From: Octopus sinensis
Taxonomy: Eukaryota
Direction: 5' to 3'
DNA: 64,000 bases
NCBI RefSeq assembly: GCF_006345805.1
Contig: NC_043002.1
Coordinates: 12,896,001-12,960,000 of the forward strand
Position 1 is the first letter of the stretch. Each line of letters starts with the position of its first letter. Position numbers and translations under genes: made by a program. Below are positions 6,653 to 54,950 of this stretch, piece by piece. The notes under the pieces were generated by a model, which worked only from the letters and a program-made list of their open reading frames with translations, did not search any database and was not told where the DNA came from.

Positions 6653-6929
6653 TGAATTTTCCTCCAAAAACCTGACGGTTGCAGTCATCATACTGGCTGT
6701 TCCTGCGCACACAAACCTGCTGTGACTGCGAAAACACCGTGCCTTTTCCGCATGCCTGTGCTGTTGTATATACATAGTTACATGAATAGAACTCACTGCA
6801 GTTACTCGGTGAACGAACGAAATGTGAACCGACTCTTATTTGTGTTATTTTACACAAATTCGAGATATCTTCACAAAAAACGACTGACACTGCGATCAGG
6901 AGAACGGCGGCTGCAACACGAAACTCCAT
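6653..6929 (-). CDS. Gene A exon 1: signal peptide + peritrophin-A (CBM14) chitin-binding domain 1; downstream exons not found in the window
   Basis: MEFRVAAAVLLIAVSVVFC (hydrophobic signal), then six Cys spaced CX17CX5CX9CX12CX9C. Phase-1 donor TTCA|gtaagt at 6653/6652. 74% aa identical to gene B exon 1 (hand count). Confidence 0.9.
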
Positions 6930-6983
6930 AATTTTTTATACACTGTAAAATCGGATAATCAAAATAAATTGCTTGCAATAACT

Positions 6984-7192
6984 CTATCACAACAGACTGG
7001 TAATCTCTCTATTTCTGACTGAGTTGCTTGAAAAAATGTCTCTTATATAGTAACTTGCAGTGGTATGATACCAATCAGGTTTAGGGCTTGGGGAATTACT
7101 AGAGTTCATGTTTAATTGACTCAGAATTTGGTCACTGTTCTACAAGCAAAATGACCTCCACCCAACTGCTACACAACCTTGCTAGACAACTT
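6984..7192 (-). promoter_or_regulatory. Gene A core/proximal promoter
   Basis: On minus strand: CTATATAAG (7050-7042), Inr-like TCAGTC (7022-7017) about 29 nt downstream, TGATAG (6989-6984). On plus strand: CCACCC (7158-7163) and ACCTTGCTAGACAACTT (7176-7192). All conserved with B and C. Confidence 0.65.
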
Positions 7193-8029
7193 GTGTTATC
7201 GGACTTCTTCGTCATGATGTTGCTGTTCTTGTTGTTGCTGTTGTTGTTGTTGTTGTTGTTCTTCTTCTTCTTCTTCTTCTTCTTCTTCTTCTTCTTCTTC
7301 TTCTTCTTTATCTTTCTTTTTTTCTTCTTCCGTCGTAGCTCTTTCTTTGCTTTTATTGTTCTCTTAAACTTTGTCACACTTTTGTCAAAATCGAGTTTTA
7401 CTTGTGGTCGATAAAAAGAGTGTATACATACGTGCATACATACAAACATTCATGTCTATTATACACACATGCACATGTACATATTTACATTCATACAAAC
7501 GTACATACACATACGTATGCTTAAGCGTCCGCGTGCCTGCGTTTATGCCTAAACAACACCAATACACACACACACACATAAGTATGTATGCATGTATATA
7601 TATATACATATATATATATATACACACACTGTTTGTGTGTGCATTGATTCTGTACACCCAGAAAGTCCACTTTACATATGAAAATTGGTATTTCTGAAAA
7701 GAACGCCCTTACGTATACATAGAAACAAAAACGTTGTCTGTCATCTAGAAGCTCAGATAGTTAAATTGTCAGGAAGAATGACGCAAAATCCTGTAATCAA
7801 ACCTGTTTCATGTATTCGGTGCCAGAGTGGGCCTCGAAACGTTTTGTGTGGGTGCGCTAATTTGCAATAATTATAGAGTTAATTATAGAAGTGTTACAAT
7901 TTAACTAATTTTAGAATTTAACTATTTCAAATTCAACTAATTTTGGATCGTCTTGAAAACGTTGTGTCATCATGTATTTTCGGATGTATTTGTTTGAATG
8001 AGGTTCTTTGTATATATATATATATATAA

Positions 8030-8310
8030 GGCCCAGTGGTTAGGGCAGCGAACTCGCGCGGTCGTAGGATCGCGGTTTTGAATCCTAAACCGAGCGTTGT
8101 GAGTGTTTATTGAGCGAAAACACCTAAAAGCTCCACGAGGCTCCGGCAGGGGGGTGGTGGCGATCCCTGCTGTACTCTTTCTTCTGTTGGCTTGCTCGCT
8201 TAGCTAGCGGGATGGCGTCATTTCAAGGTTAAAACAATGCGAAGCGCATTGAGACAAGCGATGTGTAGCAACATCTGATAGCCTGGTCGGTCACGGTGAT
8301 CACGGTGATA
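8030..8310 (+). mobile_element. tRNA-derived SINE family 3, tail type 1
   Basis: GGCCCAGTGGTTAGGGCAGCG...GGTTTTGAATCC head; ends ...cggtcacggtgatcacggtgata. Confidence 0.75.
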
Positions 8311-8401
8311 TATATATATAATATATATATATATATATATATATATACACACACACACACACACACACACACACACATATATATATATATATATATATAT
8401 A

Positions 8402-8766
8402 CAAGCAGTATCGCCCGGCGTTGCTCGGGTTGTAAGGGAAATAACTATAAAGCATTTTTAGAGTTATAGCCAAAAAATGGAAAAAAAATTATGGTAAATT
8501 TTTTTAGTTAAAAAGGTCGAGTTGCGTCCCCTAGACAGTCTGTTGTTTGTGTTTCTGATTCTCGACCCCATGTCGAATTTATCGATTTTTTTCAGAACTG
8601 GGGGAACTTTTCAAAATTTTCGCTGCGTTAGTTTTGAATTATGACATTGGGCTATGTGTGTGTCAAGTTTCATCAGAATCGGTTGAAAGCCGTGGTCAGG
8701 GTGAGGGTACAACCTAACAGACACACAGAAACACACACAGACAAACTGCCGTTTATATATAGAGAG
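8402..8766 (-). mobile_element. Non-autonomous Helitron-like element
   Basis: Same 3' terminus (CCCGAGCAACGCCGGGCGATACTGCTTG|T), different body. Confidence 0.72.
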
Positions 8767-51784: not shown

Positions 51785-52170
51785 GTGGAGGCGCAATGGC
51801 CCAGTGGTTAGGGCAGCGGACTCGCGGTCGTAGGATCGCGGTTTCGATTCCCAGCCCGGGCGTTGTGAGTGTTTATTCAGCGAAAACACCTAAAAGCTCC
51901 ACGAGGCTCCGGCAGGGGATGGTGGTGATCCCTGCTGTACTCTTTCACCACAACTTTCTCTCTCACTCTTACTTCCTGTTTCTGTTGTACCTGTATTTCA
52001 AGGGGCCGGCCTTGTCACTCTCTGTGTCACGCTGAATATCCCCGAGAACTGCGTTAAGGGTACACGTGTCTGTGGAGTGCTCAGCCACTTACACGTTAAT
52101 TTCACGAGCAGGCTGTTCCGTTGATCGGATCAACCGGAACCCTCGTCGTCGTAACCGACGGAGTGCTTCC
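51785..52170 (+). mobile_element. SINE family 3, tail type 3
   Basis: 12-bp TSD accgatacatgt (51773-51784, 52171-52182); empty paralogous site near 44222. Confidence 0.9.
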
Positions 52171-53914
52171 ACCGATACATGTGGTGGTGGAGGATCACAC
52201 TTAGTTTGAACAGCCTCGATCACGTGACAGTCAGTTTTTTTTTTTCATTTTTCGTCTTTTACCGAAAGAATGAAAGAATAAGAGAATGAAGATGCGTATC
52301 CTAGTGTTTAGGGTGTTGCACTCACGATCGGAAGATTATTTTTTGAGGTTCCGCCTGGAGTGAGCGGTATGTTGTGTCCTTTAGTTCACGTTGATCCAGT
52401 TCACGCATTAGTGAATAATCCTGCGGTGGACTGGCGTCCCGTCCAGTGTGTGTGTGTTCTGACCTCGGTCACATATTTCATGGAAATTGAATAACCGGCC
52501 TTATGCAGTCTCGAACTCAAAACGTAAATGTTCAGGGTTTGATGATAATGATGAAAGATTTGAAGGCAATGGCTGATTCAGTGAAATCGAAAATTAATAT
52601 AACATACTTTAGTCTGATATTAAATCGAACTGTCCTTTTATCTCCTTACCATAAAATTTCTAAAACCAGTGGTTTCAAATTTTAGCACAAGGCCAGAAGA
52701 TTTATGAGGGGGTTAGTCGGTTACCCTGAACCTAGAACTTCACTGGTACTTTATTTTATCCACCGCGAAAGGGTTTATAATAATGTTGACCTCTGAGGTT
52801 TGAACCCAGAACTCAAAGAGCCGAAACCAATAAAGCAATGCGAAATTACTTCCAATGCTGTAACGAATCCTGCTTCCTACCATTCTTTGTAATTTTGAAA
52901 TTAATCAAATGCCAGTGAAATCGACCTCAGTACTTGAGAAGAACTATATTTTCTCAAGAGTCGATCAGTGAAGAATAGCGTTAACCTTGAATGAATTTAA
53001 AAGCTCAAAGGAGGTGACAAATACCGCAAAGCACAGACGCCCTTCAGGATACTGTCAGTGTGCCACACTAAAGTAATAATAATAACAATAATAATAATAA
53101 TAATAATAATAATAATAATAATAATAATAATAATAATAATAATAATAATAATCTTTTCTACTCTAGGCACAAGGCCCGAAATTCTGGGGAGAGAGAGGGG
53201 CAGTCGAGTAGATCGACCCCAGTACGCAAGTGGTACATAATTTATCGACTCTGAAAGTATGTATTTGGTGTACCCTTATAGTTATGACAGGTATATTGGG
53301 CTTCGTATAGTTGTACCCCAGTGCCACATTGATTGCATGCGCTCCCACCACACTCAATAATAAAAATAAATAATAATAGTAATGATCATAAGAAGAAAAA
53401 TTCCTAGAAATGACGAAGAGCCTGTAAGGCTGTTCAGTAATATCATCGGGCTGCATCATTGGTCTTGATGAGTTTCATAATGCTAAGTTTGTATGAGGTG
53501 GCCTCAAGTAAACAGGCGATAAAACCTGCTAAACCATTAGCACCCTGGCCTTTGCTGGTAGTGAACAGCTGACACTGTAGTACATCTTCAGCGTTGGAAG
53601 CTGTGCAAAAGCAGCAGCAACGACAACAACAACATTAATAATAGTAATAATAATAATAATAATAATAATAATAATAATAATAATAATAATAATAATAATG
53701 ATAATAGAAGAGCACTATCGCTGTGAAAATAACATCCATCCATGAATTTATTTATTTATTAATTTTAATTTTTAAATGCATATTTTATCTGTGAATTTGC
53801 GTGTGCAATCTGGGAATGCATACAATGCCCTTCTCTGCCCTAGGTGTATGGAAAACACTCGGCGAGAAATGGAAGAAAATTTGAAGAAAGAAGGAAAAAA
53901 AATAATAATAATAA

Positions 53915-54318
53915 TAATACCCGAAACTGAGCAAGTATAAAGATCTTGAAATAGAAATTAGCAAGACTAAAACAATACCTGTTGTGATAGGTGCCCTAAG
54001 AATGATAGCAAAAGGGGTTGATTGCTCTCTAGTTCAGATAAAAGGAAACCCCAAAATTGCAGAAATTCAAAAGATGGTGCTCATGAGAACTGCCCATATC
54101 TACGCAAAATACTGTCTATGTAATCTCAAGTTTTAAAACAAACACATAATTTTCTTATGGTTTGTTAAACATTCTGTAGAACACCACTATGTACAAAGCC
54201 AAATATATGGCACCCTAGGCATAACACCAACATAAACTTCAAACTTGTCTTTTGAGGTCTGTGGGTGAGACTTGGAGCCAACTTGTACAAATGTAAGGCA
54301 AAAGTCAAACATAAATTA
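53915..54318 (+). mobile_element. R4/Dong 3' end
   Basis: Matches 4290-4730; flanked by (AAT)n. Confidence 0.82.
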
Positions 54319-54409
54319 ATGATAATAATAATAATAATAATAATAATAATAATAATAATGATGATGATGATTATGATGATGATAATAATAATTAACGTCG
54401 CCCTTTTCA

Positions 54410-54635
54410 TGAGCCTGGTTTCCCGGTTTCTGTGGCGTATGTTTTCCCCCCAGCTGGACGGGACGCCAGTCCATTGCAGCGTTACTCTAGAAACAGGAAG
54501 AGAAAGTGAGAGAAAGTTGTGGCGAAAGAGTACAACAGGGGTCGCCACCACCCGTTGCCGGAGCCTCGTGGAGCTTTTAGGTGTTTTCGCTCAATAAACA
54601 CACACAACGCCCGGTCTGGGAATCGAAACCGCGAC
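54410..54635 (-). mobile_element. SINE family 3, 5'-truncated, about 40 nt from the gene C exon 1 donor
   Basis: Reverse-complement similarity to 51785-52170. Confidence 0.75.
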
Positions 54636-54673
54636 AATAATAATTACAATAAAGTAAATAAACATAAACTTAC

Positions 54674-54950
54674 CGAATTTTCCTCCGTAAATGACACGGT
54701 TACAATCGTCATATTGGCTGTTACTCAACACACAGACTTGTTGAGACTGTGAAAACACTGTTCCCTTACCACATGCTAAAGGTCGTAGAAACATAGGATT
54801 ACATAAATAAAATTCACTGCAGTTCCTTGGTGATCGCAGAAAATGTGATCCCGGTCTGATTTCTGTCTGCCTACACAAGGTCATAATGTCTTGGCTGTAG
54901 ACTGCTGTGACTGCGACCAAGAGAAAAACAGCTGCAACACGAAGCTCCAT
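54674..54950 (-). CDS. Gene C exon 1: signal peptide + CBM14 domain 1
   Basis: MELRVAAVFLLVAVTAVYSQ..., same six-Cys spacing; donor TTCG|gtaagt at 54674/54673. 80% aa identical to gene B exon 1 (hand count). Confidence 0.92.

Follow-up and report, generated by a model that had tools for sequence, protein, structure and literature searches.

The 64,000-nt window analysed here, which is the whole stretch of Octopus sinensis DNA at positions 12,896,001 to 12,960,000 of the forward strand of contig NC_043002.1 (RefSeq assembly GCF_006345805.1), raises the question of what is encoded by three similar openings scattered along its minus strand between positions 6653 and 54950, counted from the first letter of the window. 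These openings, recovered from the open reading frame (ORF) listing and by direct reading, start with MEF/LRVAA and stop at a GTAAGT donor, and they belong to three head-to-tail paralogues, termed A, B and C. The three genes are genuine and intact-looking. We consider it rather probable that they encode secreted two-domain chitin binders of a beak or cuticle scaffold, and that the window holds part of an octopod gene array of the type of DgCBP-2, the "Chitin binding beak protein 2" of the squid Dosidicus gigas. An initial interpretation made from the letters alone, referred to below as the sequence-only reading, had proposed a tandem cluster of double-CBM14 chitin-binding genes for cephalopod chitinous tissue, without recognising a named gene.

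The coding part of exon 1 is located at 54674-54950 in gene C, at 29781-30057 in gene B and at 6653-6929 in gene A, all on the minus strand. In each copy it extends over 277 nt from the ATG to a phase-1 GTAAGT donor and, as annotated for C, comprises the signal peptide and CBM14 domain 1. Exon 2, which encodes CBM14 domain 2, is a 180-nt phase-1 exon on the same strand at 46626-46805 in C and at 20800-20979 in B; it is preceded by a polypyrimidine-AG acceptor in both genes and followed by a T|GTRAGT donor (T|GTAAGT in B, a dangling T before GTGAGT in C). Only exon 1 of gene A falls inside the window, its exons 2 and 3 lying beyond the left edge; the distance from the end of this exon to the edge is 6.6 kb, as against first introns of 7.9-8.8 kb in B and C. 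A tblastn search with the three models returned exactly these five exons, and between paralogues the E-values run from 1e-38 to 1e-48 in exon 1 and are about 1e-22 in exon 2, which excludes chance. A longer multi-domain gene was also considered and rejected, as tblastn at E up to 10 found no further CBM14-like exon in the window. The head-to-tail paralogues, their 277-nt and 180-nt exons and the phase-1 introns described in the sequence-only reading are thus recovered at the same coordinates, and its junctions, 29781/20979 in B and 54674/46805 in C, are exactly those that we read from the sequence.

Exons 1 and 2 together comprise 457 nt and leave a dangling T, and in the 152-aa homologues of RefSeq and UniProt the final residue is that of the last complete codon of exon 2. 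The first two bases of exon 3, AA, complete a split TAA stop codon with this T, so that the B and C proteins are exactly 152 aa long and the remainder of exon 3 is 3' untranslated region (3'UTR). The third exon therefore accounts for the length of 152 aa, which had been given correctly in the sequence-only reading. In gene C, exon 3 lies at 45070-45197 on the minus strand, starting at 45197 with the AA that completes TAA and carrying AATAAA at 45087-45092, with an approximate 3' end. Its position is set by LOC106872971 of Octopus bimaculoides, which has the same 277- and 180-nt exons, whose recorded coding sequence (CDS) takes in just the first 2 nt of a third exon (cag|AA), and whose exon-3 region is 86-87% identical to window positions 44875-46992; exon 3 itself is 87% identical between the two genes. 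The candidate exon 3 of gene B, at 16900-17027 on the minus strand (acceptor ttgcag|AA at 17027, AATAAA at 16919-16924, 3' end approximate), is placed less firmly than that of C, to which it is 62% identical with the same geometry of acceptor, stop and poly(A) signal; AATAAA begins 103-105 nt downstream of the start of exon 3 in B and C. Reading through the exon 2 donor would give 154 aa in B, ending in FQCK, and 163 aa in C. Splicing seems to us the likelier alternative, given that the T|GTRAGT donor is conserved and that only the first two bases of exon 3 belong to the CDS recorded for the O. bimaculoides orthologue.

Each of the three copies seems to be transcribed from a promoter of its own. 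Three occurrences of the decamer CTATATAAGA are found in the 64 kb, compared with 0.28 expected, in all cases on the minus strand and once before each ATG: at 55074-55083 in C, 133 nt upstream of the ATG, at 30177-30186 in B (129 nt upstream) and at 7041-7050 in A (121 nt upstream). The putative TATA box of C is embedded in a promoter and 5' untranslated region (5'UTR) block at about 54951-55224 that is conserved with B, A and the orthologues, and that of B in a conserved block at about 30058-30325. When the 300-nt upstream regions of A, B and C were aligned with those of the O. bimaculoides and O. sinensis genes, the TATA box was invariant, upstream blocks were common to the sequences and the 5'UTR was conserved. 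A, B and C are therefore best described as three predicted transcription units. A single gene with alternative first exons was rejected, since a separate exon 2, exon 3 and poly(A) signal belong to each of B and C, and every copy, A included, has a TATA box of its own.

The encoded proteins are compact. The Pfam scan with CBM_14 (PF01607), which the sequence-only reading had suggested as a check, matched both domains of B (E 2.8e-17, 63 bits) and of C (E 4.8e-15, 55.9 bits), in two stretches each, as well as exon 1 of A (E 2e-9, 37.9 bits), all above the gathering cut-off of 22.1 bits. Domain 1 has the cysteine spacing C-17-C-5-C-9-C-12-C-9-C, domain 2 has C-13-C-5-C-10-C-12-C-7-C, and both fit the six-cysteine register of approximately CX13-20CX5-6CX9-19CX10-14CX4-14C. 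The domains are joined by a linker of 13 residues, and the 12 cysteines per protein are enough for six disulfides. The N-terminal 19 residues resemble a signal peptide (hydrophobic core, V-x-S/C before Q), and the predicted mature protein is about 133 aa and about 15 kDa, and basic (isoelectric point 8.3-8.6). An NCS sequon occurs without variation, and B and C carry an N[K/R]T sequon as well; the products are probably N-glycosylated. Both the sequons and the architecture of a signal peptide with two CBM14 domains, devoid of a mucin linker or catalytic domain, agree with what had been read from the letters alone. An AlphaFold2 model built on the family alignment gave a predicted local distance difference test (pLDDT) score of 82. 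A Foldseek search of the PDB matched it to EHEP, Avr4 with chitin hexamer, the CBM14 domain of CHIT1, tachycitin and Der p 23, with a probability of 1.0 for the first four; since the alignments take in no more than one or two small domains, the whole-query template modelling (TM) scores are low, at 0.27-0.33.

Two features distinguish individual copies. At codons 19-20 of A and B (6870-6875 and 29998-30003), a Cys occupies the predicted -1 cleavage position (VYC|Q, VFC|E). At this position C has Ser or Gly, as do 11 of the 12 recovered octopod homologues, the twelfth having Cys. If signal cleavage were shifted in A or B, the mature protein would bear a 13th, unpaired cysteine. Gene B also has an extra NGT sequon in domain 1, at codon 62 (29872-29874), that is absent from C and most homologues.

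A word-indexed search with these proteins returned octopod proteins only. RefSeq models of 152 aa are present in O. bimaculoides (LOC106872971 and LOC106872972), O. sinensis and Argonauta hians, older O. bimaculoides entries exist in UniProt, and the Octopus vulgaris copies are annotated "binding beak 2" in the source database. Cluster look-ups place at least 12 family loci with near-consecutive LOC numbers on one chromosome of O. sinensis, and O. vulgaris has four consecutive family entries, one locus containing two near-identical copies 19 kb apart. The at least 12 O. sinensis loci and the tandem copies of O. vulgaris bear out the earlier proposal of a lineage-expanded tandem family. In the neighbour-joining trees, the second of which was confined to exon-1 columns because the first had grouped partial sequences by common gaps, C is the orthologue of LOC106872971 with bootstrap values of 97-100; the CDS is 93% identical, and the non-coding flanks and introns are 85-90% identical. 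Of the O. bimaculoides, O. sinensis, O. vulgaris and Argonauta loci compared with the window, none is its source and those of O. bimaculoides come closest, which makes the window that of an octopod near to O. bimaculoides but distinct from it. B groups with O. bimaculoides A0A0L8H4B7 (bootstrap 86). These groupings imply that the array is older than the split of these Octopus species. Among the octopod loci compared, no orthologue of A was identified, and LOC106872972 is not syntenic with it.

Some further features were noted in the related arrays. The 188-aa "binding beak 2" model of O. vulgaris on OX597819.1 (extract 10001-35084) spans two paralogues and repeats the domain-1 sequence; it looks like a fused gene-model artefact. 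Downstream of LOC106872971 in O. bimaculoides there is a copy of the promoter plus start codon, followed by an intron-2/exon-3-like copy (extract 23635-24076 and 24868-26187), and an exon-1-like piece is found about 2 kb upstream of LOC106872972 (extract 7938-8126); partial duplications are thus reshaping this array. A spliced homologue, with domain 1 joined to domain 2, was detected in the Tara Oceans metatranscriptome ERR1712002, indicating that the junction equivalent to that of exons 1 and 2 is used in some planktonic cephalopod or mollusc transcript.

Outside octopods, the most informative relative is DgCBP-2 (AKI30063.1, UniProt A0A0G2UIZ7; 158 aa). A HMMER search with the family profile detected many long multi-CBM14 proteins, and the short full-length matches were LOC106869808 and LOC106869807 of O. 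bimaculoides and DgCBP-2, the last with an E-value of 1.7e-41 and with residues 2-142 matching profile positions 3-141 of 152. By BLASTP, C is 55% identical to DgCBP-2 over 122 aa (E 1e-39), and the identity of the squid protein to full-length family members is 46-55% over 120-147 aa. Searching back with DgCBP-2, the best non-self matches are the octopod family, a reciprocal best-hit relation; it scores 121-137 bits against full-length members of the clade, compared with 111 and 82 bits against the other octopus two-CBM14 paralogues, LOC106869808 and LOC106869807. On sequence grounds, then, the family probably corresponds in octopods to DgCBP-2, with many genes to the one of squid, with the reservation that the deep nodes of the neighbour-joining trees are without support and that no other decapodiform sequences were recovered in the searches around DgCBP-2. 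Of the earlier functional proposal, the link to chitinous hard tissue is strengthened by this full-length homology to a squid beak protein, whereas its implication that the gene lacks a name is not borne out: DgCBP-2 is named, O. vulgaris has "binding beak 2", and 152-aa RefSeq models exist in three other octopods.

Substitution patterns differ between paralogues and orthologues. The ratio of nonsynonymous to synonymous substitutions (dN/dS), estimated by the Nei-Gojobori method, is 0.16 for B-C, 0.18 for A-B and 0.10 for A-C at dS of about 0.9-2, and the duplicates in the window are old and constrained. For C (54674-54950 and 46626-46805) against O. bimaculoides LOC106872971 (locus extract 10001-10277 and 15736-15915), dN is 0.069, dS 0.089 and dN/dS about 0.78, from about 32 substitutions. 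The changes are mainly conservative and clustered in loops and in the C-terminal tail. This divergence may reflect either relaxed or diversifying selection, which are not separable with such small counts.

The squid system suggests how these proteins might act. The DgCBPs constitute one of the two squid beak protein families, which have been explored only in Dosidicus, the Humboldt squid; together with chitin they are thought to form a hydrated scaffold that is later infiltrated and cross-linked by His-rich proteins, beak hardening relying on catechol cross-linking. The octopod genes are three-exon units in which exon 1 supplies a cleavable signal peptide and domain 1, exon 2 supplies domain 2, and exon 3 provides the stop bases and the 3'UTR. 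The products would be secreted by chitin-depositing epithelia, as for the squid DgCBPs, with the beak-forming cells as the first candidates and possibly those of the radula, gut and sucker cuticle. Chitin binding by the octopod proteins is likely, and fibrils would be bound through the aromatic face of each CBM14 domain. Since the molecule is bivalent, it could cross-link fibrils, as was first suggested for Ag-Aper1, a mosquito protein with two domains, and the two octopod domains on their 13-residue linker might tie the fibrils into a hydrated chitin-protein scaffold that is hardened later.

The genes are situated in a repeat-rich environment. Tandem or within-window repeats make up about 43% of the window and coding sequence 1.9%, and the expression "hidden in repeat DNA" used in the earlier description is a fair one. 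Introns and spacers contain pieces of reverse transcriptase from non-LTR retrotransposons (RVT_1, zf-RVT) and of mariner/Tc1-like transposase, at 3522-4511 (+), 23525-23947 (-), 33219-33932 (-), 61491-61796 (+), 36331-36825 (-) and 37506-38399 (+). An element of about 150-400 nt that resembles a short interspersed element (SINE) recurs many times, for example at 12511-12842, 16220-16541, 17957-18107 and 40279-40594. A C2H2 zinc finger (Pfam E 2e-5) is encoded by a short ORF at 32391-32672 on the minus strand, directly downstream of the reverse-transcriptase fragment at 33219-33932; this ORF is either part of the retroelement or a displaced piece of the C2H2 family that is expanded in octopus. 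An orphan exon-3-like copy lies at 41536-41855 (minus strand; acceptor cag|AAGTGACC at 41763, AATAAA at 41663-41668), with neither exon 1 nor exon 2 in its vicinity. Either it is what is left of a paralogue that was lost from between B and C, or it serves C as an alternative terminal exon, and splicing of C exon 2 to it would likewise create T|AA and the same 152-aa protein.

Several points weigh against the assignment of these proteins to chitin in the beak or cuticle. DgCBP-2 is itself biochemically uncharacterised, only a domain of DgCBP-3 having been studied. EHEP binds phlorotannin and tannic acid and is without chitin-binding activity, as is Der p 23, so that the fold alone is no proof of chitin binding. 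The signal peptide was recognised by eye, and our search of the literature on the LOC identifiers, octopus CBM14 and beak proteins retrieved no expression, proteomic or binding data for the octopod members. With regard to beak specificity, a squid "chitin binding beak protein" is among the differentially expressed genes in stomach/intestine. This transcriptome result, along with the Foldseek match to tachycitin, an antimicrobial chitin binder, would suit a gut-lining, mucosal or immune role, in which a small peritrophin- or tachycitin-like binder acts in the cuticle-lined foregut or stomach or on epithelia and the copy number is expanded by diet or pathogens. The large, recently duplicating array, with its at least 12 O. 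sinensis loci and the near-identical tandem pair of O. vulgaris, and the fast divergence of C from its orthologue between close species could be understood in the same way. We nevertheless regard such a role as unlikely: the nearest named relative, DgCBP-2, came from beak tissue, our literature search yielded no expression data that place the octopod genes in gut or immune cells, and the dN/dS of about 0.78 derives from about 32, mostly conservative, substitutions.

It is quite unlikely that the ligand is, instead of or besides chitin, a polyphenol or catechol, such as a beak tanning agent or a dietary compound, bound in the manner of EHEP. EHEP is the best PDB match by both sequence and fold while lacking chitin binding, and beak hardening does use catechol cross-linking; however, the identity is only 27% and the TM-score 0.33, EHEP arranges three domains in a triangle around its ligand, a site for which the two-domain octopod proteins lack the third domain, the phlorotannin rationale is inapplicable to carnivorous octopods, and the closer relative DgCBP-2 is classed among the chitin binders. 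A mixture of these functions is similarly doubtful: the array would then be a diversifying two-domain set with split roles, some members binding chitin in the beak, radula, sucker lining or foregut and others serving as EHEP-like catechol or polyphenol binders in beak tanning, as might be suspected from the at least 12 loci of O. sinensis, the three or more copies in the species of the window and the near-neutral protein divergence between close species. That some or all of the three copies are decaying pseudogenes, retained by recent duplication only, is very improbable. Copies do decay in the array, as the orphan exon-3-like relic at about 41.7 kb illustrates, gene A is visible in the window as exon 1 only, and the divergence of C from its orthologue is not distinguishable from neutral. 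Yet the frames, splice sites, 12 cysteines, TATA boxes and poly(A) signals are all undamaged, O. bimaculoides has conserved counterparts of both B and C, and the paralogue dN/dS of 0.10-0.18 at dS of about 1 or more points to long-standing constraint.

We thus favour the interpretation of the genes as secreted two-domain chitin binders of the beak or cuticle. The architecture and the domain family were already known, as were the named squid homologue and the automatic gene models in four octopods, and no new kind of protein is revealed; the anatomy in the sequence-only reading was accurate and its functional guess reasonable, and its estimate of novelty was too high. In the literature searched, we found no published description of the octopod family. 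What the window adds is that octopods carry conserved, tandemly expanded homologues of DgCBP-2 that keep the compact architecture, each apparently with its own promoter of a common type. A, B and C are concrete candidates for research into the biology of beak and cuticle in octopus, as well as for bio-inspired chitin composites, and the array is a tidy case for studying how arrays of structural proteins expand.

Compared with known systems, the octopod proteins share with the insect obstructor/CPAP3 proteins and the mucin-type peritrophins the property of being secreted CBM14 proteins, those of the latter groups belonging to chitinous matrices. CPAP3/obstructor proteins have three CBM14 domains with set spacers, and many peritrophins have mucin linkers, whereas the octopod proteins have two domains and a 13-residue linker. 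EHEP of Aplysia kurodai (25 kDa; PDB 8IN3/8IN4/8IN6) is, like them, a molluscan secreted protein made solely of tandem peritrophin-A domains, and it is the best solved-structure match, with a sequence E-value of 8.8e-12 over both domains and a fold E-value of 2.6e-7. Its reported cysteine pattern, CX15CX5CX9CX12CX5-9C, is comparable to that of the octopod domains, although EHEP has three domains rather than two and 27% identity. Ag-Aper1 of Anopheles gambiae, a peritrophic matrix protein whose two chitin-binding domains were proposed to link chitin fibrils into a network, likewise consists of a signal peptide and two tandem peritrophin-A domains and nothing else. It belongs to the arthropod midgut, and the similarity, compared only through the common Pfam family, is at the level of domain family and architecture; the same architecture was probably assembled independently in the two lineages.

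DgCBP-2 provides the closest comparison. A single squid sequence is known, as opposed to a tandem array in octopods, and the documented evidence of localisation in the beak comes from the squid protein family alone. The C-terminal third of the squid protein diverges, containing eight His residues where the octopod proteins contain one or two, and an adjacent Cys pair (ECC) is found where the octopod proteins carry C5. In the remainder the correspondence is extensive. The proteins are of similar length, 158 against 152 aa, and both consist of a signal peptide, CBM14 domain 1, a short linker and domain 2; the NCS sequon and the TVFSQSQQVCV, YDDC and IYGG motifs of domain 1 are common to both, and in both domain 2 starts with NDPLC...NRDP.DC.RFIPCFN.T.

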